This document shows, piece by piece, positions 2,382-56,614 of a stretch of DNA of 64,000 bases. Location: the IMG/VR virus record IMGVR_UViG_3300042868_005134, positions 310,001 through 374,000 of that record, one strand, 5' to 3'. Numbering within the stretch: the first letter of the stretch is position 1; each line of letters starts with the position of its first letter. The notes under the pieces were generated by a model. That model was not told where the DNA came from, did not search any database, and saw only the letters and a program-made list of their open reading frames with translations. The translations under genes were made by a program, and so were the position numbers.

Positions 2382-5300
2382 TTACCAAGTACCTGCGCCG
2401 TGTGCCGTACGTTTCCAGATGTCTGTGGTGTCATTAACATAGTTTGCTGTACAATAATAGATGTACGTGGAATCAAATGCCAACATACCTGCTTGATCGC
2501 CGGCTGCTCCATAACTGTGTGCTGGGACTGCTACTTTCTGATAAGCTGTGGTCTGTACTGTGGCGTCTGGGAATGTAATCTGCCCACCTGATGCCAAAAT
2601 CAATCTATCAGCATTGATATATTGAAAATAATCAATTGAGTTTGTACTTCCGCCTGTGCCTGAAGATGATGCCAAAGTTGAGTTTGGTTTATCAAACACG
2701 CAGTTGAAAATTGAATAAAACCCTGATAAAGAAACTGGAGCAACGGCAGTTAATGCTGAAGTTAATATTTGGCAATTGGCTAAACTGACCACAGTTGAGG
2801 CACTAGATGTGACAGCGTTTGTGACAGCTGCAATTACTACGGCATCTACAACATTTAATGTTCCTGCAATTACCGATGGGGCAATACAAGACATACTATT
2901 TTTGATAATTACACTTGCACCAGCATTATTCACTGTTACAAAAGATGGATTACCATCATTAATAGTCACAAGTCCATTGCCTGTTATATTACAAGCGGTG
3001 CCAATGTCACAGTTGTGTATATCAGTAAAAGTGGCATTTCCACTTTTAGTTAATGTTCCACTTATATTACAATTAATAATATTAGGAACTCCAACACCTG
3101 TACCAGCAGTAATGGTAAGATTTTCAATTGTTAATCCTGTAATTGTACAGCCCACAGATGTACTGACTGTTCCAATAATCGCAGTATTCCCACCCAATGG
3201 TTCAAATGTGGTTAAGACTGTGTATTGAACTGTTATTGTTGGGCTTTCAGTATAGGTGCCTGGGTGAATAATAATTGTTCTACGTTGCCCACTTATCAAA
3301 GTCAACGCCTTGGTGATGGATGCTACTGGTTTAAGCAGGTCGCCATTACCACTGGTGTCGTTACCGTCAGTTTGACTAACGTGGATTTCATAGTCATATC
3401 CAGTAAAGATACCTGGGTAGGCTGTGCTTTGAACTGTGTTGTCGGGGAATGTTAAACCGCCCGTTGTGCCAAACTGCCATTGCTTACCAACTGCTGTGCC
3501 TGTAATAGTAGTAGTCAATATCCCTCCACCACCGTTTATTGTGGCAACCGTGATTTGTATATCATTGGCAGGTGTAGTACCACCAAGTTCATTGCCTGGA
3601 ATTTTGAACCAGTTGCCCGGGTTAAACCCATTACCAATACCAGTGACATCAACAGTATAAGTGCCGTTTTGATTGGCTGTCACTGTACAGGCAAAATATT
3701 GTGCGTTGGACGAAGGTGTAAACATTCGTGTGACATTTGCATTCAATGCTTCCCAATAGGCTTGATTAAATGTGTAAGTTGTTGTTGAATGGGTTGCTAT
3801 GTTTAATGCTGTTTCATTTGTAAGAATAGAACTATCTGCGGGCAATGTTAATGCACCATCTGTGCCAAATCTCCAGAGCTTAAAGCTCTCAACTGAGTTA
3901 GCAAAAATAGAAAACTCTCGCTCACTGGTTATTGCTAACCCAGTTGCATTTTCCCCAATCGTTCCATTTGAATCTCCTGGTAGTGTTAATGTACCATCCG
4001 TGCCAAATCCCCAAGTCTTATAGTCACCGTCCGCCTGCTGTTTTGCGCGAATAACAACATCGCCAGACATTGTAATGCTACTGAGGCCTGGATTAGTTAG
4101 ACGTATATTATTATGCCACGATTCAATCAGCTGTAGAAAGGGCAGTTGTATAATACCCTTTCTATGAGTTGGATTGCCGGTGCCCTCTTCGATGTTGTCA
4201 AATGCCCATACGACTGGATAATCTGGTTGGGCAGGATCATTGGCCCAAATCCCAACACCGGTAGTACCCTCTATATTGCCTTGAGATAATACTAAGTGTC
4301 CGTAATTATCAAGAGTCGCTGTGTGAACACCGTTGACTAAACTATTTACACTGCCAGTCCATGCCGTAGTTTGAACTGTGCTATCTGGGAATGTCAATGC
4401 ACCATCGTTGCTAAATGTCCAACGCTGTAGTGTAGGGCCAGCAGGATCAATGTCGATGTTGATGTTGCCCAGGCTCCTGATGTCACCTGGGATTCGTAAA
4501 CTTCCATCTCCGGCGAATTGCCAACTATGGCTCACATCTTGGTCATTGAGTAATCCTATGTTAAGTCCAGTAACGCCAGCATATATGCCAGCAGTCTGTA
4601 CATCTTCTCCAACAGGAAGTTGATTATTTCCCGCAGTCCACTCCACGACTAATTGATTCAGACCAGTGTGAACTATATAAAGACTACCGTTGGGACTGGT
4701 GTTAGTAATCTCGGCGTGACCGTTAGCACCACCAAATCTAAGGCCGACTGGAGTTGTCAAATTACCATCTGTGTCAAACGTCCACTCATTCTCATTGGCA
4801 AGTATACTGATGTTGCTACTTGTTCTTGTTGAATAATTTGGACTCTCAACTGAATATGGTGCTGATTCTAGAGGAAGGTTAGCATCAAATGTTAATTCTA
4901 AAATTGTGTTGCCTTCTACATATTCGGCGGCAAGTACTGTGTAGTAATCGGTTGTGCCGTCAGGATTAAATTGCCAGTCAACTAGGCCTGTGGCATCCAT
5001 AGCGTCTTTCAAACTTTGTGGAGTAGTATCCATCCAGAACCCAGCTGTCTTAGCGTTGATGTCTGCACGAATCCATCCTGGGATATCAGTGAGTCTAGTA
5101 CCAACTTCTGGAGTTGTTAGCGTTTGAATAACACCGCCCACTGGTAATGTTAATTCACCGGCGTCACCAAAAGTCCAGGCGTCGTCAATTATGCCAGCAC
5201 CAGGGGTTGTGGTTTTTATCAGTACCTTACTATTGTAGCCATCAATCTCAACGACTGCGGTTTTCCCACCTCCACCATCTACGTTTAGTTGTAGGTTGTC

Positions 5301-43735: not shown

Positions 43736-45151
43736 TTACAGCTTGTAACGATCACTCATTACAGTCTTAAGCATGATGCCTTCTGGAGTGAACTGATCCA
43801 AGTCAGCGGCTAGCAAGCTAGTCATTATACTTGGGCTGAATCCACTTACCAATGCGGCACCACTCTTGTCAGCCTTAACAGGCACGTTGTCTGAACTGTT
43901 TAGGTTCCAGAAAACAACTTGTGGCATGCTGTAGCCTGCGGCTTCGAACTTGCGTTCGATCATTTCCATTGCGCTGTCGTCGTGCTTGGCGCATTGGTCA
44001 AACTGCATGTCACTCAAGATCAGCAACATGGCTGGCATGTCGCTGGCTGGTACTGAACCCTTAACCGCTACGTCTAGAATCTTGTTCATAGCCGCGTTTA
44101 GGTTAGTGCTCATGTCCCAATCACTCTTGCTCATTTGAGCAACCTTGTCAACAATGTTACCCTTTAGAGTAACAAGTTCTGGCTTGCTAGAGAAAGTCAA
44201 GAAAGTGTCCTTGAACACACCCTTGTTCTTGTCTGCTAGGTACAGGCCCAAGCTGATTGAAACATCCATACAAGTCACATTAGTGTTCTTTCCTGCTGGG
44301 CAAGACATAGAACCGCTAACGTCTACGATTGGCATGATGCTGGCATCTCCCACATAGTTTGGCAAAGCATCCCACTGTGCCACGATGTGGTCAGTGGCTG
44401 TCTTGTCCAAAATTGCACGGTTGTAGCTTCCGATAACACCCTTCAACACGTCATGTGGGAAGATTGCGCTGGCGTTAACCTTGACAGTCTTGTCACCACT
44501 TACCAACTTGGCCACATACTCAGCGAATGCTGGTGTGTGACGGCTGAATGCCTTCTTGTAGTTGCGTGAAGCAACACTTGGCACGTGACTGAAGTTGATG
44601 TTGTCCCAGTCGTTGGCACACATTTGTGTTTCCACAACTGTGGTCATTCCCACTAAACTCTTACGATACTGCTTTGGAGTCATTCCAAAGAATGCTCGTA
44701 CTTCAGCCGCAATCTTGCCCTTACGAGGAGTCCACTTTGCGGCCAGACCGTTACGGGCACGTAGGGCATCGCCCAACATGGTATAAGCGGCTGACTTCAA
44801 GTCAGGGTTAGTGAAGACAAAGATGTCATCCCAACGGCCAACTTCAGGGATCTTGCGTAGCAAAGCCAAAGCGGCGTCTGGGTCACGCTTTTCTAGATGT
44901 ACTAGAATGTCGCGGAACAATTGACGTTCACCTGCACCACCACGGACATCACGTGCCCATTGTGCGATGCGTAGTGCTACGTCACTGTTTTCTACATAAG
45001 CGGCAGTGAAGTCGCCTACAATGTTCTTACCACGGCTTGCGCCGATCTTGTAGAACAGGTCCACAGTGGCCTTGGCTGTGCTCTTACGTGCCTTCATGCC
45101 ATTGGCAGTACGGGCTTCTTGGTTTGCTATTGCTGTTACAAATGCGTTCAT
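43736..45151 (-). CDS. TROVE/Ro60-like RNA-binding protein with vWA domain (DUF2828-type)
   Basis: ARDVRGGAGER, GRWDD, AAKWTPR helical region; MIDAS DVSGSMS; STN; ILSDMQFD; VFWNL; LVSGFS. Confidence 0.8.
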   Translation of the reverse strand: MNAFVTAIANQEARTANGMKARKSTAKATVDLFYKIGASRGKNIVGDFTAAYVENSDVALRIAQWARDVRGGAGERQLFRDILVHLEKRDPDAALALLRKIPEVGRWDDIFVFTNPDLKSAAYTMLGDALRARNGLAAKWTPRKGKIAAEVRAFFGMTPKQYRKSLVGMTTVVETQMCANDWDNINFSHVPSVASRNYKKAFSRHTPAFAEYVAKLVSGDKTVKVNASAIFPHDVLKGVIGSYNRAILDKTATDHIVAQWDALPNYVGDASIMPIVDVSGSMSCPAGKNTNVTCMDVSISLGLYLADKNKGVFKDTFLTFSSKPELVTLKGNIVDKVAQMSKSDWDMSTNLNAAMNKILDVAVKGSVPASDMPAMLLILSDMQFDQCAKHDDSAMEMIERKFEAAGYSMPQVVFWNLNSSDNVPVKADKSGAALVSGFSPSIMTSLLAADLDQFTPEGIMLKTVMSDRYKL

Positions 45152-46693: not shown

Positions 46694-46876
46694 TTACTTA
46701 TTTGTTGCTGTCTGTATATTATAATTGATTTGACTTTGTTTGTCAAGTCTTTCAAATTCTTCATCTTCAAGTTTGGCTTCTTCTAGACGCCTAGGATCAG
46801 GCTTTCGAAAAATAGTATCATAATTCGAACCAAATGCTTTCAAATCTGTTGGACGTTGTTTACTGCCCTTACTCAT
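46694..46876 (-). CDS. Hypothetical protein
   Basis: AGGAG RBS; MSKGSKQRP...NYDTIF. Confidence 0.55.
   Translation of the reverse strand: MSKGSKQRPTDLKAFGSNYDTIFRKPDPRRLEEAKLEDEEFERLDKQSQINYNIQTATNK
46718..46746 (-). promoter_or_regulatory. Consensus sigma70 promoter
   Basis: TTGACA-17 nt-TATAAT. Confidence 0.8.
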
Positions 46877-47517: not shown

Positions 47518-47546
47518 ATTATACAATCTAGCTGTGAGTATGTCAA
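47518..47546 (-). promoter_or_regulatory. Consensus sigma70 promoter
   Basis: TTGACA-17 nt-TATAAT; predicted start coincides with the 5' end of the tRNA-like RNA. Confidence 0.8.
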
Positions 47547-49219: not shown

Positions 49220-49248
49220 ATTATAGCGTCTTCTGAGGTTGCTGTCAA
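49220..49248 (-). promoter_or_regulatory. Consensus sigma70 promoter heading tRNA array A
   Basis: TTGACA-17 nt-TATAAT. Confidence 0.85.
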
Positions 49249-49260
49249 CTACTTTTTGAA

Positions 49261-50679
49261 TTATTTTAAATTATATTCTAAATAATTCTTAAAAAATTCT
49301 TTATTTTTTTCAGCAAGTAACTTATAGTCTAGGTCTTGTTTGTTTGTATTCATTATTTCAGAAAACTCAAAACCCGCACTCGCATGTTCTCCCAAACGCC
49401 AAGACGTTGGCTTACCAATATGGTCCATTATAGAATTTAGTGACTTAGAAAATTCTGTTACTGTTTTTGCGTCCCAGTAATCGTTTTCCCAAAACTCTGT
49501 CTGTAATGGTTTCATAAATCTGTAACCGTACTGGCTATAGTTCTCATCAAACTTACTTTTGTAGGCCGAAGCTGGATCTCTAGATATCCCTAATGGATTA
49601 AATCTCCAATCATACATTTCATTGTCCAAACACCACTGATGAGTAGCGTATAAATCTTCTCTAGTTTCACCAGTTAGCCCAGCAATAAAACTCAATTCAA
49701 ATGTTATTTCGTCTTTCCATGTTTGCTTTAATGTTTGTAAAAATTCTTTTCCGTGTACGCCATTCCAACCTTTACCTACAATTTTACAAGCATCCTTATG
49801 AAAACTTTCAATTCCAAAGTATGCGCTTTTGAGTCCTGAGTCTTTTAATTGCTGTATTGAACCTGGTCGAGATCCTATCAAATCTAATCGATTGTAGCCA
49901 ATCCATTCTAACTTAAATGGTAAATTTTGTACTATTTCAGTTATAGCTTCCATTTTTTCCTGACTCTCGTTAACTGTATCATCAATGAAAAAATATCTAG
50001 TTGTACCAAACGTTTCGTAATTGTACATAAGTTCTTCCTTAACCAAGGAATAATCTCTTAGATAAGTATTTTTCTTTTTACCTAGATTAGGATATCTGCA
50101 AAATGAACAAGAAAACTGACAGCCCCGACCTAATTCAATTGGCAACACTTCGTACGATTGAACAAAGTCATCTTTCACAAAAGCAGGACTAAGTGTTTTA
50201 ATATCAAAAGGTGTCCGCGTTAACGATACATTAGATTCCTGATCTAGAAATTTTAATAAATCATTCTCAGCATTTCCGTGCAGCTTAATCCAATCTAAAT
50301 AGCAATTTTTTGCGTATGAATTAGAGCCTCCTAAAATCCATTTTAACTGAGGGAACTTATTTTCAAGTAGTGGCCTCGAGTTTAAAATCCATTCGGGTTC
50401 GCTCACTACCATAGATAGTCTGCCAGTCGTTGTTGCTTTGCGTAATGCCCCGTCGTGCCAAAATGTAGAACTTACACCTATGCCTATAGTTGTAGAGTCT
50501 ACAAATTTCGAAGTTACTTCAACTAATTCATTAGTAGTAAATTTCTGACAAAAGTCTATTACTTTAACAGTATAGCCATGTCTCCTTAACCATGCGGCTA
50601 ATTGATACGGACCCAGTGGTCTCGTATGTCCCGATTTATCTGGTAGATAAATCGAATTCCAAATTATAAAATGTGCCAT
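49261..50679 (-). CDS. B12-binding-domain radical SAM protein
   Basis: RPLGPYQLAAWLRRHG N-terminus; ELGRGCQFSCSFC; FIDDT; GIES. Confidence 0.88.
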   Translation of the reverse strand: MAHFIIWNSIYLPDKSGHTRPLGPYQLAAWLRRHGYTVKVIDFCQKFTTNELVEVTSKFVDSTTIGIGVSSTFWHDGALRKATTTGRLSMVVSEPEWILNSRPLLENKFPQLKWILGGSNSYAKNCYLDWIKLHGNAENDLLKFLDQESNVSLTRTPFDIKTLSPAFVKDDFVQSYEVLPIELGRGCQFSCSFCRYPNLGKKKNTYLRDYSLVKEELMYNYETFGTTRYFFIDDTVNESQEKMEAITEIVQNLPFKLEWIGYNRLDLIGSRPGSIQQLKDSGLKSAYFGIESFHKDACKIVGKGWNGVHGKEFLQTLKQTWKDEITFELSFIAGLTGETREDLYATHQWCLDNEMYDWRFNPLGISRDPASAYKSKFDENYSQYGYRFMKPLQTEFWENDYWDAKTVTEFSKSLNSIMDHIGKPTSWRLGEHASAGFEFSEIMNTNKQDLDYKLLAEKNKEFFKNYLEYNLK

Positions 50680-50712: not shown

Positions 50713-51378
50713 TTAACTAATATGTAGGACAGGAATAGTTACTTTCGGTTTTGCTGGATATTTTAAATCTGGTTTTGTATGATGAATCCGTCTGTTTCTA
50801 TTAATATCTTTATAACCAACTCCTAAAATTATCATAGGCTGTCCCTGGATATTTAACACTGTCTGAAGACCGGCTATATCAAAGCATCCGCAATAACCTG
50901 TTGAGTATCCTAATTGATGTGCTAATAGATTCAAGTATCCACTAGCTATACCTATGGACATGTGAATGTCGATTAACATACGTTTCTTTGCCGTATCCGA
51001 CACTAAGCCTGCTGGATGTCTAAACTCTTCAAAGTACGTATTCAAATACGGCCTGTCTGAATTAGCTGTAAGTATATCTGCTAGTGTTAACTGTTCGAAT
51101 ACTACTAACATGTTTGCCAATGTTTGTGAATTATTTTCTATGCTCATTGAGGGTGGAAAATCGAAACCACTTGTATTGTTGTAAACTTGTTCTATTACAG
51201 TCCGATTAGTAATAAAATGGCATCGATAAAATGCAGCATTTTGTTTACTGGGGCATTGGGTTACTGCTTCAACTAATAAGTCGATATCTTCTTGCGGAAT
51301 TGATCGTGTTAAATCCCAATTTCGTTGGCAATGTTGACTTTTTTGAATAGTAATTTTTACTGCTGATTTATCGATCAT
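50713..51378 (-). CDS. Nitroreductase family protein
   Basis: QRNW...IP...CPSKQN; IGIASG...LGYSTGYCG; GVGY. Confidence 0.8.
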   Translation of the reverse strand: MIDKSAVKITIQKSQHCQRNWDLTRSIPQEDIDLLVEAVTQCPSKQNAAFYRCHFITNRTVIEQVYNNTSGFDFPPSMSIENNSQTLANMLVVFEQLTLADILTANSDRPYLNTYFEEFRHPAGLVSDTAKKRMLIDIHMSIGIASGYLNLLAHQLGYSTGYCGCFDIAGLQTVLNIQGQPMIILGVGYKDINRNRRIHHTKPDLKYPAKPKVTIPVLHIS

Positions 51379-51411: not shown

Positions 51412-51485
51412 TGGTGCTCCTAGGAAGGATCGAACTTCCAATTACACTATACCAAAGTGTCGGTATTCCATTTACCTATAAGAGC
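51412..51485 (-). tRNA. tRNA-Thr(GGT)
   Basis: ACACT-TTGGTAT-AGTGT; CCA. Confidence 0.9.
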
Positions 51486-51487
51486 GT

Positions 51488-51562
51488 TGGTACCGCTTAG
51501 TGGAATCGAACCACTATTCACACTTTAGAAGAATGTTGTCCTATCCATTGAACGAAAGCGGT
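51488..51562 (-). tRNA. tRNA-Arg(TCT)
   Basis: ACATT-CTTCTAA-AGTGT; CCA. Confidence 0.9.
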
Positions 51563-51569
51563 AAAATTT

Positions 51570-51645
51570 TGGCAGGGGAGATGAGATTCGAACTCATGAT
51601 GACGATTTCAAAGACCGTTGCCTTAGGCCACTAGGCGACACCCCA
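51570..51645 (-). tRNA. tRNA-Gln(TTG)
   Basis: ACGGT-CTTTGAA-ATCGT; CCA. Confidence 0.88.
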
Positions 51646-51653
51646 ACAAATAA

Positions 51654-51776
51654 AACAGGATACGTTTTTTACGAAGGGCATGGAGCCCTTTGCTCAACCG
51701 CTGAGCGAATCTGCCATAAGGCAAATGTTGGAATCGAACCAACGTGTCATAAATGACTTTGCTGTGCGTATCCTTA
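51654..51776 (-). ncRNA. Family-1 copy 4: YrlA-like circularly permuted tRNA mimic
   Basis: AGGATACG/CGTATCCT helix + ACAGCAAA enclosing T-arm, loop-closed acceptor stem, D-arm and anticodon-like arm, in that order. Confidence 0.8.
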
Positions 51777-51779
51777 ACT

Positions 51780-51899
51780 TGGTGTCGTTGCTGGGATTCG
51801 AACCCAGATCTCTTCCTTTAGAGTGGAATTTTGATTGTGCTGACTGTATCCTTAACAGGATAACCTTTTATAAGCGTCCTACCATTAGACGACAACGAC
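51780..51899 (-). ncRNA. Family-1 copy 5: 120 nt tRNA-like RNA with internal family-1 helix and CTA loop
   Basis: GTCGTTG/CAACGAC-ACCA; D- and T-arms; insertion TATCCT-GTTA-AGGATA-CAGTCAGCA; TTCC-ACTCTAAA-GGAA. Confidence 0.7.
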
Positions 51900-51904
51900 A
51901 TGAC

Positions 51905-51981
51905 TGGTACCCCTAGGCAGATTCGAACCGCCATCCAGCAGATTTTAAGTCTACCCGCACTACCAATTAGCGTACAGGGGC
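51905..51981 (-). tRNA. tRNA-Leu(TAA), short variable loop
   Basis: GTAGA-CTTAAAA-TCTGC; CCA. Confidence 0.88.
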
Positions 51982-52158
51982 ATAAATATTTTTGTGAAAA
52001 CTTACGATCACTTAACACCGCAAGGATTACAGTTTCACCTTTGTTTGTACCAAGGTGTGTGCTGTGTTATGGTACACGATATATACGACAACACCTACTT
52101 CGAATTACAATACTTCACTGACGTTAACAAAGCACTTCGCTTTGTCAACAATTTATAA

Positions 52159-52235
52159 TGGTACCCCTTGTCTGATTCGAACAGACAGCCAACTCCTTTT
52201 GAGAGAATCCGCACTACCAATTAGCGTAAAGGGGC
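52159..52235 (-). tRNA. tRNA-Leu(CAA), short variable loop
   Basis: Loop CT-CAA-AA; CCA. Confidence 0.88.
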
Positions 52236-52238
52236 ATA

Positions 52239-52315
52239 TGGTACCTTCGGGCGGGTTCGAACCCCCAACCAACAGTTTCTAAAACTATCCGCACTCCCAA
52301 TTAGCGTACGAAGGC
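52239..52315 (-). tRNA. tRNA-Leu(TAG), short variable loop
   Basis: Loop TT-TAG-AA; CCA. Confidence 0.85.
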
Positions 52316-52326
52316 ATTTAAATTTT

Positions 52327-52401
52327 TGGTAGTCGATGCTGGGTTCGAACCAGCGACCTACACGATGTCAACGTGGTGCTCTACCACTGAGCTAATCGAC
52401 T
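52327..52401 (-). tRNA. tRNA-Val(GAC)
   Basis: Loop TT-GAC-AT; CCA. Confidence 0.92.
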
Positions 52402-52402
52402 A

Positions 52403-52477
52403 TGGTACCCTTGGACAGTTTCGAAATGTCGACCCTCGCCTTATCAAGACGATGCTCTTCCTCTGAGCTACAAGGGC
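52403..52477 (-). tRNA. tRNA-Ile(GAT)
   Basis: TCGTC-TTGATAA-GGCGA; CCA. Confidence 0.9.
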
Positions 52478-52491
52478 ATAAACTACTTAGG

Positions 52492-52562
52492 GGTGACTAT
52501 CGGGGCTCGAACCCGAACTACCAGAGTCACAGTCTAGGTTGCTACCATTACAACATAGCCAC
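52492..52562 (-). tRNA. tRNA-His(GTG), no encoded CCA or G-1
   Basis: CTAGA-CTGTGAC-TCTGG; C73. Confidence 0.85.
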
Positions 52563-52574
52563 ACCTAAATAGTC

Positions 52575-52648
52575 TGGTCCTCTCGACAAGAATCGAACTT
52601 GTAATGGCCGGTTATCAGCCGACTGTTATACCATTTAACTACAAGAGG
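52575..52648 (-). tRNA. tRNA-Ile(GAT)
   Basis: GTCGG-CTGATAA-CCGGC; CCA. Confidence 0.88.
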
Positions 52649-52654
52649 AATAAA

Positions 52655-52720
52655 AACAGGATAGCATTTTTTGGCTTTTTTTACAGAAAAGATTTTTTTG
52701 ATTTGCTGTTGCTATCCTAA
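52655..52720 (-). ncRNA. Family-1 copy 6: mini RNA with GTA (Tyr) anticodon stem-loop
   Basis: AGGATAGCA/TGCTATCCT; ACAGCAAA; CTTTT-CTGTAAA-AAAAG. Confidence 0.75.
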
Positions 52721-52722
52721 AC

Positions 52723-52812
52723 TGGCAGTGAGTAAGGGATTCGAACCCTTGGGCCCCTAGCGGAGCCGACAGTTTAGCAAACTATTGGGTTAAGCCACTC
52801 CCCCAACTCACT
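52723..52812 (-). tRNA. tRNA-Ser(GCT)
   Basis: ATAGT-TTGCTAA-ACTGT; variable arm; CCA. Confidence 0.9.
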
Positions 52813-52974
52813 ATATAGGTTTTCCCGGCGACCAACTATCTTTCTTAAGGACTCGCTGGCTTGTCTCGTGTGAAAGAGTTTATACAGACCTTGTACAATT
52901 CTACTGGCGTGTCATGCTCAAGAAATAGGGCACTAGAATACAAGGGACTCATCTCAACGTCTAGCTGGGAAACT

Positions 52975-53066
52975 TGGCGGAAGACGGAGGAGTCGAACCC
53001 CATCCCATTTCTGAGAACCCAGTTTTCAAGGCTGGTCGGCGCACCAACGCACCTGCATCATCTTCC
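52975..53066 (-). tRNA. tRNA-Ser(TGA), 8/4-type cloverleaf
   Basis: 8 bp acceptor GGAAGATG/CGTCTTCC; 4 bp T-stem; 6 bp D-stem; loop CT-TGA-AA; CCA. Confidence 0.8.
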
Positions 53067-53072
53067 ATAACT

Positions 53073-53147
53073 TGGTGCTCCCTCACGGACTCGAACCGCA
53101 ATAACCGGACTACAAAACCGGTATAATAGCCTTTATATTAAAGGAGC
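53073..53147 (-). tRNA. tRNA-Thr(TGT)
   Basis: Loop TT-TGT-AG; CCA. Confidence 0.85.
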
Positions 53148-53152
53148 AAATT

Positions 53153-53227
53153 TGGCGCCCACATATGGAATCGAACCACAATCCCCGGTTTCGTAAACCA
53201 GTATATTATCCATTATACTATGCGGGC
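53153..53227 (-). tRNA. tRNA-Arg(ACG)
   Basis: CTGGT-TTACGAA-ACCGG; CCA. Confidence 0.9.
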
Positions 53228-53232
53228 AAATT

Positions 53233-53307
53233 TGGTGGTAATAGTAGGATTTGAACCTACACCTTGCTCCGTATGAAGGAGGTGCACTACCGTTATGCTA
53301 TATTACC
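53233..53307 (-). tRNA. tRNA with CAT anticodon (Met or Ile2)
   Basis: Loop TT-CAT-AC; CCA. Confidence 0.85.
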
Positions 53308-53308
53308 A

Positions 53309-53402
53309 TATAGAAACACACTAGAGTTTTACGATAAACTACGCTCCTGAGTTTCTGCCCAAGAGCTCATAGGTCTGCCTATGTTTCTAATGTGTTTTTA
53401 TA
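53309..53402 (-). ncRNA. Family-2 long-stem element with three inner hairpins
   Basis: TATAAAAACACATTAGA/TCTAGTGTGTTTCTATA; CATAGG/CCTATG; GCTCTTGGG/CTCAGGAGC; AGTTT/AAACT. Confidence 0.55.
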
Positions 53403-53477
53403 TGGTAGGGGCACAGGGAATCGAACCCTGATAGACCGGTTAAAAGCCGGATATTCTAGCCGTTGAATTATACCCCC
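53403..53477 (-). tRNA. tRNA-Lys(TTT)
   Basis: Loop CT-TTT-AA; CCA. Confidence 0.9.
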
Positions 53478-53480
53478 ATA

Positions 53481-53556
53481 TGGTCCACAGCGTCAGATTC
53501 GAACTGACACCTCATCGGTTAAGAGCCGAGTACGCTACCGTTAACGCCAGCTGTGG
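53481..53556 (-). tRNA. tRNA-Lys(CTT)
   Basis: Loop CT-CTT-AA; CCA. Confidence 0.88.
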
Positions 53557-53641
53557 ATGGATCGTAAATATTTTCTTTTACGTGCCATCCAGGACCATAC
53601 GGGATCCGGGATGACACTACAGTTTACCTGTACGTTTCATG

Positions 53642-53770
53642 TCATTCTCCTTTGTTGATATTTCTCTTTTGTGCTTGGCGTTCTGATTTCCAGAACACTC
53701 GTTTCCAATCTTTCAAATGCTTCCACCATTGTGGAGGCGCAGTTAGGTTACCTTTTTTGACATTTGCCAT
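53642..53770 (-). CDS. Small basic Trp-rich protein (42 aa)
   Basis: AAGGA RBS; MANVKKGNLTAPPQWWKHLKDWKRVFWKSER... Confidence 0.55.
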   Translation of the reverse strand: MANVKKGNLTAPPQWWKHLKDWKRVFWKSERQAQKRNINKGE

Positions 53771-53786
53771 AGGATTTCCTTTATAA

Positions 53787-53846
53787 AACAGGATGCTTAT
53801 TTTTCAATTAAAAGTTGAATTTTTGAATTTGCTGTTCGCATCCTAA
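53787..53846 (-). ncRNA. Family-1 copy 7: mini RNA with TTT (Lys) anticodon stem-loop
   Basis: AGGATGC/GCATCCT; ACAGCAAA; TTCAA-CTTTTAA-TTGAA. Confidence 0.75.
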
Positions 53847-53848
53847 AA

Positions 53849-53924
53849 TGGTACACCCTGTTGGAATCGAACCAACTTCAACGGCTCTTCAGACCGCCGC
53901 TATGACCACATCAGCTAAAGGTGC
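53849..53924 (-). tRNA. tRNA-Phe(GAA)
   Basis: GCGGT-CTGAAGA-GCCGT; CCA. Confidence 0.88.
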
Positions 53925-53932
53925 ATTATACT

Positions 53933-54008
53933 TGGTCTCCCTACCAGGATTCGAACCTGGACCACACGGCCCCAAACCGTGTACGCAACCTGATAACGCT
54001 TTAGAGAG
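53933..54008 (-). tRNA. tRNA-Pro(TGG)
   Basis: CACGG-TTTGGGG-CCGTG; CCA. Confidence 0.88.
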
Positions 54009-54015
54009 ATAAAAT

Positions 54016-54090
54016 TGGTGGAGGCCGAGGGAATCGAACCCTTCTAGTCACGATGCTTGCAAGGCAACGCCGTAGCCCACTACTGCCCCC
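54016..54090 (-). tRNA. tRNA-Ala(TGC), reduced D-arm
   Basis: G3:U70; GTAG-TGGG-CTAC; loop CT-TGC-AA; CCA. Confidence 0.8.
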
Positions 54091-54160
54091 AATTACAAAG
54101 CATACTATTCTAACTCGTCAAAAGAGTCTGCGTTATACGTCTTTAGTATACTTTGTAATT
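54091..54160 (-). ncRNA. Family-2 long-stem element
   Basis: AATTACAAAGTATACTA/TAGTATGCTTTGTAATT; inner GACTC-TTTTGAC-GAGTT. Confidence 0.5.
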
Positions 54161-54237
54161 GGCTGTCCGACTAGGGATCGAACCTAGCTCATTCTTCGTT
54201 AACAGCGAAGCGCCTACACCATGCTTGCTCTCGGACA
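54160..54237 (-). tRNA. tRNA-Asn(GTT)
   Basis: CTTCG-CTGTTAA-CGAAG; CCA. Confidence 0.85.
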
Positions 54238-54244
54238 ATAAAAT

Positions 54245-54320
54245 TGGCGCCATGGACGGGACTCGAACCCGCCTGGTACGGATAGACAATCCGCTGCCCT
54301 ACCCCGAGGACTACCATGGC
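54245..54320 (-). tRNA. tRNA-Asp(GTC)
   Basis: GCGGA-TTGTCTA-TCCGT; CCA. Confidence 0.88.
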
Positions 54321-54324
54321 ATGT

Positions 54325-54399
54325 TGGTATCGCGTACGGGGATCGAACCCGCCTGAGTAAGTTGAAAGCCTACGGACCTCACCAGAAGTCAAACGCGAT
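54325..54399 (-). tRNA. tRNA-Glu(TTC)
   Basis: GTAGG-CTTTCAA-CTTAC; CCA. Confidence 0.85.
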
Positions 54400-54406
54400 G
54401 TAATAA

Positions 54407-54468
54407 AACAGGATAGCATCTTTTTTCCATTAAAAGTGAAATTAGAATTTTTGCTGTTGCTATCCTAA
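54407..54468 (-). ncRNA. Family-1 copy 8: mini RNA with TTT (Lys) anticodon stem-loop
   Basis: AGGATAGCA/TGCTATCCT; ACAGCAAA; TTTCA-CTTTTAA-TGGAA. Confidence 0.75.
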
Positions 54469-54471
54469 AAT

Positions 54472-54559
54472 TGGTGGAGGCTGATGGAATCGAACCACTT
54501 GACAGCCACCCTGCTTAATATGTCTACCGGGTTACAGCCGGCAACAGGGAACAACCTCC
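54472..54559 (-). tRNA. Atypical D-armless tRNA-Tyr(GTA)-like gene
   Basis: GGAGGTT/AGCCTCC-ACCA; GCCGG-CTGTAAC-CCGGT; normal T-arm; no D hairpin. Confidence 0.65.
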
Positions 54560-54817
54560 AATTTGTTAACACACTCACGACCGGTAATTACCAATCCATA
54601 AGCAAACTATGTTCACTTATAAAGAATGTGTATATTAAAAGCCACTAGCAGGAAGAACTATGTTCCACTAGCCTCCAAGGACTAGCCCAACACCAATTGC
54701 TTTTAATATGACAGATTTTTCGCTCTAGAAGAAGAGTTTCATCCTTGCCACCGCCCGTTTGCCCATGTTTTAAGTGCGGGCCAGGACCTCGTTTCCTGTA
54801 TGTTCACACTTTGCGGT

Positions 54818-54970
54818 CTACAACTGCCCTTGAGCAATCTCGCGCTTTCCAACAGCTTTGTGGTATAGTTTAGCTCTTGCTAACTTGTTCACAATCAATT
54901 GCTTGAACTGTTCTTTAGTTAACTCGTACTGCCTAGTCCACTCTGCTTCTTTAATCTTTTTTTCTATCAT
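54818..54970 (-). CDS. Hypothetical basic protein (50 aa)
   Basis: MIEKKIKEAEWTRQYEL...; first ORF after the attenuator. Confidence 0.4.
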   Translation of the reverse strand: MIEKKIKEAEWTRQYELTKEQFKQLIVNKLARAKLYHKAVGKREIAQGQL

Positions 54971-54980
54971 TCTTCTTGCG

Positions 54981-55018
54981 AAAAACAAAAAACCCCAGGA
55001 GTGTTAATCCTAGGGTCC
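54981..55018 (-). terminator. Intrinsic terminator (attenuator) upstream of tRNA array B
   Basis: GACCCTAGGA-TTAACAC-TCCTGGGGTT followed by TTTTGTTTTT. Confidence 0.85.
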
Positions 55019-55041
55019 TTGGAGTGAGCGTGTAATTTGTG

Positions 55042-55188
55042 TTACACAATGTCCTCCCGGACCCTTGAAATCTCTGGTGTACGATCATATGATAGACTTC
55101 CGCCATTAATCGATAACCAAGCGCAGGCTATTACACCTGCCTGTTTGGGCATCGTATTAAACAGTTGATGTCTATTGGACAATTGCAT
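55042..55188 (-). CDS. Candidate attenuator leader peptide (48 aa)
   Basis: MQLSNRHQLFNTMPKQAGVIACAWLSINGGSLSYDRTPEISRVREDIV; its last codons carry AGGGTCC, complementary to the terminator 5' arm. Confidence 0.7.
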   Translation of the reverse strand: MQLSNRHQLFNTMPKQAGVIACAWLSINGGSLSYDRTPEISRVREDIV

Positions 55189-55245
55189 TTTGTTTCTCTT
55201 TAAAACCTTGTTTACTTAAACAGCACCATTGCTGTCTATGTGTTA

Positions 55246-55274
55246 ATTATAACGCCTTTCAGCGTCCCTGTCAA
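55246..55274 (-). promoter_or_regulatory. Consensus sigma70 promoter P1
   Basis: TTGACA-17 nt-TATAAT. Confidence 0.88.
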
Positions 55275-55345
55275 CAACTTTTGGAATCTTTCTTTGTTGT
55301 ATTTTTACAACACTCGCAGACTACATTGTTTGCTAACTTGTTTCT

Positions 55346-55374
55346 ATTGTACTACTAATTAGTCTCTGTGTCAA
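55346..55374 (-). promoter_or_regulatory. sigma70 promoter P2
   Basis: TTGACA-17 nt-TACAAT. Confidence 0.8.
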
Positions 55375-55431
55375 CAACTTTTTGTCTTTTTGGACAAATT
55401 GTTTTAACAGCGAATCTTTAACAGTCTTTCT

Positions 55432-55460
55432 ATTGTATGTTTATTTAGTCTCTTTGTCAA
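55432..55460 (-). promoter_or_regulatory. sigma70 promoter P3
   Basis: TTGACA-17 nt-TACAAT; spacer similar to P2 (AGAGACTAA). Confidence 0.8.
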
Positions 55461-55529
55461 GAGCCATATGATAATGTGGCATTTTTACAACAAAATAAAA
55501 AAGCCACATCGTTATTTAAAATGAACAGT

Positions 55530-56555
55530 CTAGATTACATGTTTAGTTACCATAATTTCGTCAACTGTTAGACACTGTGATCGTCTACATATAGTTGGAA
55601 TTGTGTTGAAAACTATTTCATCGTTGAACACATTGCCAATCTTGCCATCGTTCTTACAAATGCCAAAGTGCATGTCGCCGTTGGCATCTATAGCAAGTTT
55701 TTTCATTCCTACATTACAACTCCAGCCTTTGAACTTGTTTAAGTCTTTCATTATAATAGAGTATGCACTTGCCTGTGTAGTTTTAATTATGCCATCTTCT
55801 TCTACAGTTAAGTTTATCTTAAAATTTTTTCGATTGTTAGTGGGTGCTGCGTTTTTACGCTCATCCTCTATTGATTTAATAATAGCTTTTTCGTCTTCGG
55901 AAAAATAATCAAGAGTTAAATCAGACTTTTGTGTGTAATCTTCAAGGTGTCTACTTGTTTGGAATGGCAAATTAATGTGCTGGGTAGTAGTGTTTACTAA
56001 TGGGAATATAATAAGTTTGTTAATGCCAATCGAGTGCGGTTTTAACTTTTCTTCTAACACATTCACTCTATCGAACAGCGTAGGCACCAGCATGGCCCGT
56101 ACTTCAACTTTGCCGCCATTTTCTTTTAGACGCACTGCAAGATTAACAAATTTTTCAATATCTGCGGTTTCTGGATGAAAACTAAGAAATATGTTAACAG
56201 ATTTTAAAGCTTCGCTACAACGCTCGTACATCTTTGCGGGCATACTACCATTAGTAAAAATAAAAATCTTAAACTTGTGTTCTACTAATCGTTGTAAGAA
56301 TAACTCAAAATTTGGTATGAGAAAAGGTTCGCCGCCAGTTAGTACTACTAACACAGTTTTATCTTCCGGCACTGCTGCCTTTATCTTGTCCGATACTGCC
56401 ATTAAGTCTTCGACTTTTGGCATTGTGTTAACATCTATAGTTCTGTGATTGTAAGGCTCGCAATAAGAACAGTCGTAATTACACATATCAAGTGGCTTCC
56501 AATGTACAATGTAATCAGTTAACCAATTGTCTTTTTCAATTCTTAGGAGATTCAT
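55530..56555 (-). CDS. Radical SAM protein with SPASM/twitch-like C-terminus
   Basis: CNYDCSYC; TGGEP; TNGS; SFHP; C-terminal Cys residues. Confidence 0.88.
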   Translation of the reverse strand: MNLLRIEKDNWLTDYIVHWKPLDMCNYDCSYCEPYNHRTIDVNTMPKVEDLMAVSDKIKAAVPEDKTVLVVLTGGEPFLIPNFELFLQRLVEHKFKIFIFTNGSMPAKMYERCSEALKSVNIFLSFHPETADIEKFVNLAVRLKENGGKVEVRAMLVPTLFDRVNVLEEKLKPHSIGINKLIIFPLVNTTTQHINLPFQTSRHLEDYTQKSDLTLDYFSEDEKAIIKSIEDERKNAAPTNNRKNFKINLTVEEDGIIKTTQASAYSIIMKDLNKFKGWSCNVGMKKLAIDANGDMHFGICKNDGKIGNVFNDEIVFNTIPTICRRSQCLTVDEIMVTKHVI

Positions 56556-56614
56556 ATTTTGTAGCATAAAAAACAATGTGGCCGAAGCCACATTGTTTAT
56601 AAATCAATTTGTGT

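Follow-up and report, generated by a model that had tools for sequence, protein, structure and literature searches.

A likely ribosome-mediated attenuator with an amino-acid-complete leader peptide at the head of phage tRNA arrays

For fifty years it has been disputed why phages carry tRNA genes, the main proposals being codon compensation, host shut-off and escape from anticodon nucleases, and the regulation of these genes is to our knowledge essentially unknown. The stretch of 64,000 nucleotides analysed here (the window), which is part of a 383-kb IMG/VR contig, contains a short open reading frame followed by a terminator in front of a tRNA array. Does this leader control the tRNA genes, and if so, to what does it respond? 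The original prediction, made from the sequence alone, was that the leader peptide gates the array by attenuation and samples nearly every host isoacceptor. We consider it likely that the element is a ribosome-mediated transcription attenuator heading the phage tRNA array and that its leader has been selected to contain every amino acid. Translation of the leader, the direction and size of the response and its trigger are inferred.

Anatomy of the leader locus and its relatives

The promoter, the 48-codon reading frame, the terminator, the alternative hairpin and the tRNA array that had been predicted were all confirmed on the minus strand, and we regard this anatomy as shown (Table 1). In the direction of transcription the order is three tandem promoters, the ORF, the competing hairpin and terminator, a 50-aa ORF, a second structured RNA (element 2) and the tRNAs. 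The leader between promoter P3 and the ATG is about 50 nt long. Its Shine-Dalgarno-like site is weaker than usual; AAGGAG-type sites are found at other genes of the phage.

Table 1. Positions of the features of the leader locus in the window
Feature	Coordinates	Strand	Remarks
Upstream tandem promoter P1, TTGACA-17-TACAAT	55432..55460	-	11/12 consensus matches
Tandem promoter P2, TTGACA-17-TACAAT	55346..55374	-	11/12 matches; spacing kept in relatives
Promoter P3, TTGACA-17-TATAAT, 57 nt 5' of the ATG	55246..55274	-	12/12 matches, perfect sigma-70
Weak purine-rich Shine-Dalgarno-like site AGAGA in A-rich leader	55195..55199	-	consensus A.AA.AAACAAAATG
Leader ORF, ATG, 48 sense codons + TAA	55042..55188	-	20 amino acids, 40 distinct codons
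Short mid-ORF hairpin GCAGG/CCTGC, tentative RNA polymerase pause hairpin	55123..55140	-	
Antiterminator, three-tier hairpin	55012..55065	-	base AGGGTCC/GGACCCT, middle GGAG/CTCC, apical GTGTAA/TTACAC
Intrinsic terminator, CCCTAGGA-loop-TCCTGGGG then T-run TTTTTTGTTTTT	54981..55015	-	-12.3 kcal/mol
Optional 50-aa ORF (MIEKKIKEAEW...), between terminator and tRNAs	54818..54970	-	
Element 2, second conserved structured RNA, just 5' of the first tRNA	54685..54810	-	function unknown
tRNA array B, presumed regulated target	51412..54560	-	about 23-24 genes

The array had been predicted to hold 24 tRNA genes. ARAGORN reported 21 (51412-54320) and missed two further ones (54560-54475 and 54399-54328), so that the claim holds as about 23-24. 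A promoter search of the window revealed no strong minus-strand promoter from the terminator to the array, and we therefore conclude that the array depends on read-through.

Neither the 50-aa ORF nor element 2 was part of the original prediction. The 50-aa ORF is present in roughly two thirds of the related loci, as judged from the spacing, and is missing in the diverged copy L011 described below, where the next conserved block follows the terminator after a mere 15 nt; we place it outside the core switch. Element 2 was found in 46 of 69 loci with compensatory changes at 9 of its 11 predicted pairs, and has no Rfam match.

Searching positions 54300-55600 against Rfam 15 with the E-value limit relaxed to 10 gave nothing significant except tRNA-like matches, and the whole window at gathering thresholds gave tRNAs only. 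A freshwater-2 match in the 5' UTR reached 18.8 bits against a cut-off of 49.9 bits and was treated as chance. The leader has radical SAM and nitroreductase genes in its vicinity, and the window also encodes a Ro/TROVE-like protein (43736-45151). The idea of a Y RNA, which this protein had prompted, was rejected because Rfam returned no match and in view of the conserved ORF.

A blastn search of the leader against loci containing radical SAM genes returned, by chance, a diverged copy at the head of the tRNA array of another phage (L004/L011). Two promoters precede its 43-codon ORF, which likewise encodes all 20 amino acids, and both the AGGGTCC/GGACCCT pairing and the terminator are those of the window. 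Between the window and L011 the AGGGTCC arm is read in different frames, owing to a 4-nt and a 1-nt indel, and both ORFs are open.

With a pattern describing the terminator only we retrieved 100 IMG/VR stretches, which reduce to about 75 unique loci after removal of one chance match. In these loci an ATG-initiated ORF of 42-50 codons ends 26-35 nt before GGACCCT. One to three tandem near-consensus promoters are located about 57, 157 and 245 nt 5' of the ATG, the one at about 57 nt being present in most homologous loci. The link to tRNA arrays is invariable, and we regard it as shown: wherever a locus includes at least 600 nt of downstream sequence, as 64 loci do, a tRNA array on the same strand begins 200-1211 nt past the terminator, and none of these 64 loci has a tRNA on the opposite strand. 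Since no tRNA precedes the module in 67 of the 75 loci, we conclude that the module heads the array; it does so in about 75 distinct phage contigs of IMG/VR of up to 383 kb. The module is a feature of a large group of uncultured giant phages.

A profile search with the peptide among 1.84 billion cluster representatives yielded 148 clusters at 50% identity. A genome scan added one more family member, on a 6.2-kb contig of a Polynucleobacter MAG; a Corynebacterium match of the same scan was attributed to chance, as was L019 from the viral scan. Among the cultured phages of INPHARED there was neither a near nor a distant DNA match, and we therefore conclude that no model phage carries the element. 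Following synteny through the upstream radical SAM gene led to relatives at 40-50% identity in phage tRNA regions with different neighbours, and a scan of metagenome contigs for close relatives found nothing.

Reading frame, amino-acid composition and codon diversity of the leader

Related phages should, as the original prediction had it, keep the ORF, its length and its diversity and let the peptide drift. Of 73 unique ORFs, all 73 are open in this frame, compared with 2 and 0 in the two other frames. The ATG is invariant, the length stays at 42-50 codons, and the indels that occur among the relatives preserve the reading frame.

The evolution of the peptide is near-neutral. The pN/pS ratio is 0.78 overall and rises to 1.31 where the ORF overlaps the hairpin arm, and the entropies at the three codon positions (0.67, 0.59 and 0.69) reveal no excess at the third position. 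In an alignment of 23 sequences only M1 and W24 are nearly invariant and the mean column identity is 38%. There is some amino-acid constraint in the middle of the peptide, where pN/pS is 0.40 and the Trp is fixed in position; this Trp and a DRTP motif are fairly conserved. The 3' part of the element is highly conserved at the nucleotide level.

What the relatives do keep is the amino-acid inventory. All 20 amino acids are present in 65 of the 73 unique peptides (89%), and the remaining peptides lack one or two. The corresponding background is 1.6-5.4% when residues are drawn at random from the phage proteome composition, 1.2-3.7% in windows cut from real phage proteins, about 2% (12/578) for mechanically defined small ORFs of the same loci, 0/73 when the same DNA is read in its other two frames and 5.5-8% for stop-free shuffles of the same nucleotides. 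We regard the amino-acid completeness of the leader peptides as shown.

The rare amino acids are kept in number and not in place. Cys occurs in 95% of the peptides at a mean of 0.97 per peptide, and its position wanders: the best alignment column accounts for 25% of the sequences, and it takes 14 columns to reach 90% of them. His, Tyr, Phe and Lys behave similarly. When residues were shuffled within the alignment columns, completeness fell from 89% to 18.5%, and the maximum of 2000 shuffles was 37%. Among 23 representatives less than 80% identical to each other, 20 have exactly one Cys, and only 8 amino-acid cells are empty where a Poisson expectation gives 68. From the single Cys at a wandering position and from the deficit of empty cells we infer selection for the presence of each amino acid. 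Selection can thus act on the composition of a peptide instead of on its sequence.

As the sequences are related, these statistics overstate their independence, which a broader sample of less than 50% mutual identity corrects in part. This sample comprises those 118 representatives of the 148 clusters that are at most 55 aa long; 64% of them possess the full set, and 92% reach at least 19 amino acids. The 36% that lack at least one amino acid most often lack Cys. We also considered separately the first ~36 codons, in which a stall would keep the ribosome clear of the hairpin. At least 19 amino acids are already present there in 59 of the 73 peptides, against a background of 3-5%, and the usual exception is Glu. 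The Glu codon is usually so near to the hairpin arm that a stall at this position may escape sensing.

The original prediction rested on codons. It had counted 40 distinct codons among 48, all 20 amino acids, four different codons each for Leu, Arg and Ser and three each for Gly, Ala and Val, and it had estimated about 33 distinct codons for uniform sampling and fewer for biased usage. These numbers held. Uniform sampling of 48 codons gives 33.4 ± 2.3 distinct codons, and the 23,152 stop-free 48-codon windows in the six frames of the window contain 29.2 ± 2.8, three of them reaching 40; no 48-codon window inside long ORFs does so. Given the peptide, however, synonymous-codon diversity is only mildly raised (mean z +1.5). 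The codons in excess, which are G+C-rich and rare in the phage genes (GGG, GCG, AGG, GTC and CCC), coincide with the G+C-rich stems, and the excess could derive from these. We therefore retain a pan-codon or pan-isoacceptor property as a weak signal only. The statement that the data support is that at least one codon per amino acid is selected, that is a pan-amino-acid and not a pan-isoacceptor leader.

Measured against the relatives, the original prediction fared as follows: conservation of the ORF and its length held (42-50 codons, 73/73 open), conservation of diversity held for amino acids (65/73; 64% of 118), and the peptide is indeed not conserved (pN/pS 0.78, equal variability of the codon positions). 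The sampling of nearly every host isoacceptor held in part, strongly for amino acids and weakly for isoacceptors. The idea would have been refuted by homologues without the ORF or the AGGGTCC/GGACCCT pairing, or by a codon diversity typical of 48-codon windows of this genome; none of these sequence-based refutations applies, and the codon diversity is atypical.

Antiterminator, terminator and ribosome footprint model

In the window the arms of the base stem of the antiterminator are AGGGTCC (55065-55059) and GGACCCT (55018-55012), and the stop codon (55044-55042) lies within the apical 5' arm. Four nucleotides, CCCT, are common to the 3' arm GGACCCT and to the 5' arm of the terminator, and the two structures compete for them. 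The transcript from 55240 to 54975 is much more stable than its shuffles (z -5.6), and its minimum-energy fold is the long hairpin and not the terminator. The predicted hairpin which sequesters the 5' arm of the terminator was accordingly confirmed, with 4 nt of the arm being used.

The three-tier hairpin is present in 60 of 60 unique versions of the element, at -18 to -30 kcal/mol compared with -10 to -13 kcal/mol for the terminator. Across these versions the stop codon lies 21-28 nt into the hairpin and always keeps its position at the apex. Hairpin covariation and the competition of the hairpin with the terminator are conserved across the relatives. The 5' arm of the antiterminator, though outside the search pattern, is complementary in 94-100% of the sequences, and one pair of the middle stem occurs as GC (26 sequences), AT (AU; 21 sequences) or GU (21 sequences). 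The apical helix exists in 33 distinct versions among the relatives, the inner segment having a mean z of -3.5 against shuffles. The expectation that the antiterminator covaries in related phages was thus met by compensatory changes and by these 33 helices.

Further support comes from three members found through the peptide (L117-L119). They have different terminator arms, for example CCCTGGA/TCCAGGG, which are still complementary, and they share with the other members the overlap of terminator and antiterminator, the promoter position and the downstream tRNAs. The base stem of L119 carries a compensatory change from A-T to G-C.

RNAalifold applied to the whole alignment returns the terminator and the middle stem only. 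It misses the apical helix because MAFFT misaligns this variable helix, and per-sequence folding was used for the antiterminator in place of the consensus. RNAalifold indicated no conserved structure in the first two thirds of the ORF. We could not find a convincing anti-antiterminator (1:2) or pause hairpin. The only candidate, the mid-ORF hairpin, is partly conserved: 80-90% of the sequences of alignment A1 retain three core pairs, but one pair is broken in half of the sequences. Its support is too weak to regard it as a trp-like 1:2 element.

A ribosome on the transcript was mimicked for 40 members by forcing the positions A-15 to A+12 to be unpaired. About 97% of the members adopt the antiterminator when there is no ribosome or when it is stalled at least 12 codons short of the stop. 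Once the A site is at codons -10 to -2, 100% of them adopt the terminator, the switch between the two states being at codon -11. If the A site coincides with the stop codon, this naive model yields the terminator in only 35%, and in 65% the arms pair around the ribosome; in our opinion, for which we have no calculation, such pairing is sterically unrealistic. The window's own copy does adopt the terminator with the A site at this position.

Proposed mechanism, rival explanations and known systems

The mechanism which we regard as likely is the following. Host RNA polymerase would start at one to three strong sigma-70 promoters and transcribe an ORF of 42-50 codons, the last third of which is the 5' arm of an antiterminator whose 3' arm overlaps the 5' arm of the terminator. 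If no ribosome follows closely behind the polymerase, the antiterminator would form and transcription would proceed into the tRNA genes, this being the putative default state. A lead ribosome on the last ~10 codons or on the stop codon would hold the 5' arm open, so that the terminator forms and transcription stops. Slow decoding of almost any amino acid in the first ~36 codons, which encode 19-20 kinds, would delay the ribosome and lead to more tRNA transcription; scarce, uncharged, cleaved or poorly matching tRNA are possible causes. The new phage tRNAs would then restore the speed of the ribosome and shut the switch, which would constitute a negative feedback.

Translation of the leader, stall-dependent read-through and the trigger, for which the original prediction had named tRNA cleavage by the host or starvation, thus remain inference, and its interpretation is otherwise supported. 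The attenuator model does not explain how polymerase and ribosome are synchronised, given that there is no convincing pause hairpin and that the Shine-Dalgarno-like site is weak. A bolder reading, toward which we lean by a small margin, is that the leader acts as an omnivalent translation speedometer: any shortage or destruction of tRNAs or any mismatch with the tRNA pool of a new host would de-repress the whole array, and the tRNAs produced would close the loop.

Of the alternatives, the one that survives best is a translation-coupled attenuator which reports the general availability of ribosomes or their coupling to transcription, as for host shut-off or infection time, and which senses neither individual amino acids nor tRNAs. 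Completeness would then be a side effect of an unconstrained ORF of high complexity. The anatomy of the switch and the footprint model are compatible with a ribosome that lags for whatever reason, the peptide is almost free of constraint, and completeness is imperfect in 36% of the distant representatives. An unconstrained ORF, however, predicts that about 2-8% of the peptides are complete and not 64-89%, and it accounts neither for the single wandering Cys nor for 8 empty cells where 68 are expected. We therefore consider this explanation unlikely.

We have still less confidence in a functional micro-protein, either the precursor of a RiPP modified by the neighbouring radical SAM enzymes or a small regulator, with the hairpin and terminator being merely the end of its transcription unit. 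In favour of it are the conserved open frame, the radical SAM and nitroreductase genes in the vicinity and the fairly conserved Trp and DRTP. Against it stand the pN/pS ratio of 0.78, the absence of an excess at the third codon position and the mean column identity of 38%. The ORF is always beside tRNAs, whereas adjacency to radical SAM genes is not conserved, the ORF and the radical SAM gene of L011 being more than 5 kb apart with tRNAs between them. Nor would a micro-protein give a reason for the completeness of the peptide, or for the fixed place of the stop codon at the apex of the hairpin with which the terminator competes.

It is likewise very unlikely that the terminated transcript of about 260 nt is in essence a small regulatory RNA for which gating of the array is secondary or absent. 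Strong tandem promoters and a terminator do bracket a very stable RNA (z -5.6), and attenuator-derived sRNAs are known, as for rnTrpL (PMC6614838). An sRNA, however, needs no open frame, no invariant ATG and no complete amino-acid set, and the array has no strong promoter of its own downstream of the terminator. Such a function could coexist with attenuation. Finally, a non-coding structured RNA with an incidental ORF, which the very stable fold and the high nucleotide conservation of the 3' part might suggest, is all but ruled out by the 73 of 73 open frames against 2 and 0 in the other frames, by the frame-preserving indels including the 4-nt and 1-nt pair between the window and L011, and by the absence both of an Rfam match and, in the first two thirds of the ORF, of a structure found by RNAalifold.

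If the leader is indeed an omnivalent speedometer, no earlier attenuator would sense all of a cell's decoding capacity, and viral tRNA genes would have their first dedicated regulator. With a pan-amino-acid leader, classical attenuation would be extended from one to three amino acids to all of them. Expression of the array would be tied to decoding performance, so that the competing ideas about phage tRNAs would become directly testable through the stresses that open the switch. The element could double as an alarm against host defences that target tRNAs, and with about 200 nt and sigma-70 promoters it would be a compact natural part reporting translation elongation capacity. In the literature searched we found no earlier description of such an element; this coverage is incomplete and is no proof of novelty. 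We propose that it represents a new version of the known leader-peptide attenuation, with a strong pan-amino-acid and a weak pan-codon signal.

The closest known systems are the attenuators of amino-acid operons (trpL, hisL, leuL, thrL and pheL; the Yanofsky model). They have the same order of promoter, leader ORF, overlapping antiterminator and terminator, and genes, and the same logic, in that the terminator is favoured once a ribosome gets to the end of the ORF, and the antiterminator if the ribosome stalls sooner. Their hallmarks, a short ORF, a terminator and a mutually exclusive antiterminator, are present in the phage element, its translation being inferred. Their leaders, however, contain a run of regulatory codons for one amino acid, whereas the phage leader has no codon runs and represents every one of the 20 amino acids by a single codon or a few, most of the rare amino acids occurring once. 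Their targets are biosynthetic enzymes and not tRNA genes. As no clear 1:2 anti-antiterminator was found in the phage element, its untranslated default would be read-through. In multivalent attenuation one leader likewise responds to several amino acids (Leu, Val and Ile for ilvGMEDA, Thr and Ile for thr), but these are two or three related amino acids in clustered runs; the phage leader presents 20 over about 36 codons, typically with a single Cys, Trp, His and Tyr.

In the leaders of ermC, bmrB-bmrCD, vmlR and msrD a stalled ribosome likewise remodels the RNA and switches on downstream genes, and these systems report a general problem of translation. They need a specific conserved arrest peptide and a drug, whereas the phage leader keeps only its composition. 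A conserved nascent-peptide arrest motif was not met with in the phage leader (pN/pS 0.78; only M1 and W24 nearly invariant), and since the peptide is unconstrained we conclude that it is not an arrest-peptide leader.

T-box riboswitches also link tRNA charging to antitermination of translation-related genes. They bind one uncharged tRNA directly and need no ribosome, and Rfam gave no T-box match in the leader region. In the pyrBI leader and in EF-P-dependent attenuation (PMC5021804) it is, as in our model, the distance between the polymerase and the lead ribosome that decides. The variable in these systems is the speed of the polymerase (UTP) or stalling at polyproline, whereas the composition of the phage ORF suggests that here it is the speed of the ribosome over all amino acids.

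Elements between the leader and array B

The stretch separating the attenuator terminator from the first tRNA gene of array B, the tRNA array downstream of the leader module (promoters, leader ORF, antiterminator and terminator), contains a conserved structured RNA which we call element 2. It is carried by 46 of the 69 loci, and in L011, another locus with the leader module, its counterpart lies at 2965-3090. The blocks GGAAACGAGGTCC, GCACTNTAAACA, AACGGGCGG, GGATGG and GTATTAAAGC are invariant and the helices show compensatory changes. No Rfam family matched element 2. Possibly it represents a second regulatory or processing element.

The 50-aa ORF of this stretch is preceded by a good ribosome-binding site. 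Judged by spacing, this ORF or a similar one (M-K/E-x-I-D-Y...) occurs in roughly two thirds of the loci. L011 lacks it, and it has the look of an optional insertion. Upstream of the leader ORF, the hairpin at the start of the transcript predicted from P3, the promoter closest to this ORF, might stabilise the 5′ end of this transcript.

Features in and around the leader module and the tRNA arrays
Feature	Position in window	Strand	Description
Hairpin	55220-55235	(-)	6-9 bp, ACAGCAATGGTGCTGT; extreme 5′ end of predicted P3 transcript
50-aa ORF	54818-54970	(-)	charged, MIEKKIKEAEW...; between terminator and element 2
Element 2	54685-54810	(-)	structured RNA, ~120 nt; between attenuator terminator and first tRNA
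tRNA gene	54475-54560	(-)	missed by ARAGORN; long variable arm; weak tRNA-Sec-like Rfam score only
tRNA gene	54328-54399	(-)	missed by ARAGORN; 38.9 bits as tRNA
Two radical SAM genes and one nitroreductase-family gene	49261-50679, 50713-51378, 55530-56591	(-)	within or flanking tRNA region
Three further sigma-70 promoters	49220-49248, 47518-47546, 46718-46746	(-)	perfect, 12 of 12; inside or ahead of array A
Ro60/TROVE-like RNA-binding protein	43736-45151	(-)	DUF2828 plus DUF7788, phrog_850, E 3e-142

tRNA arrays and neighbouring genes

The anticodon of the tRNA gene heading array B (54475-54560) was read by eye as GTA (Tyr), and the first array gene is likewise a tRNA-Tyr in all three other loci looked at (L011, L117 and L119). 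Another array of the window, array A, has no copy of the leader module; given the three perfect promoters inside or ahead of it, array A has promoters of its own. It is adjoined by the Ro60/TROVE-like gene; a Y-RNA-like partner for the product of this gene did not come to light.

In other large phage contigs (L004, L005 and L008), the 353-aa radical SAM protein has homologues that are likewise encoded among tRNA genes, which suggests a tRNA-related role. This role, of which base modification is one possibility, is inferred from gene position and remains tentative.

A hint at the host

The family member L116 (JBBAKF010000113.1), which encodes a 48-aa leader with all 20 amino acids, is a short contig of 6.2 kb binned to a Polynucleobacter MAG. 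This binning gives a weak hint that the phages with the leader module infect freshwater Burkholderiales.
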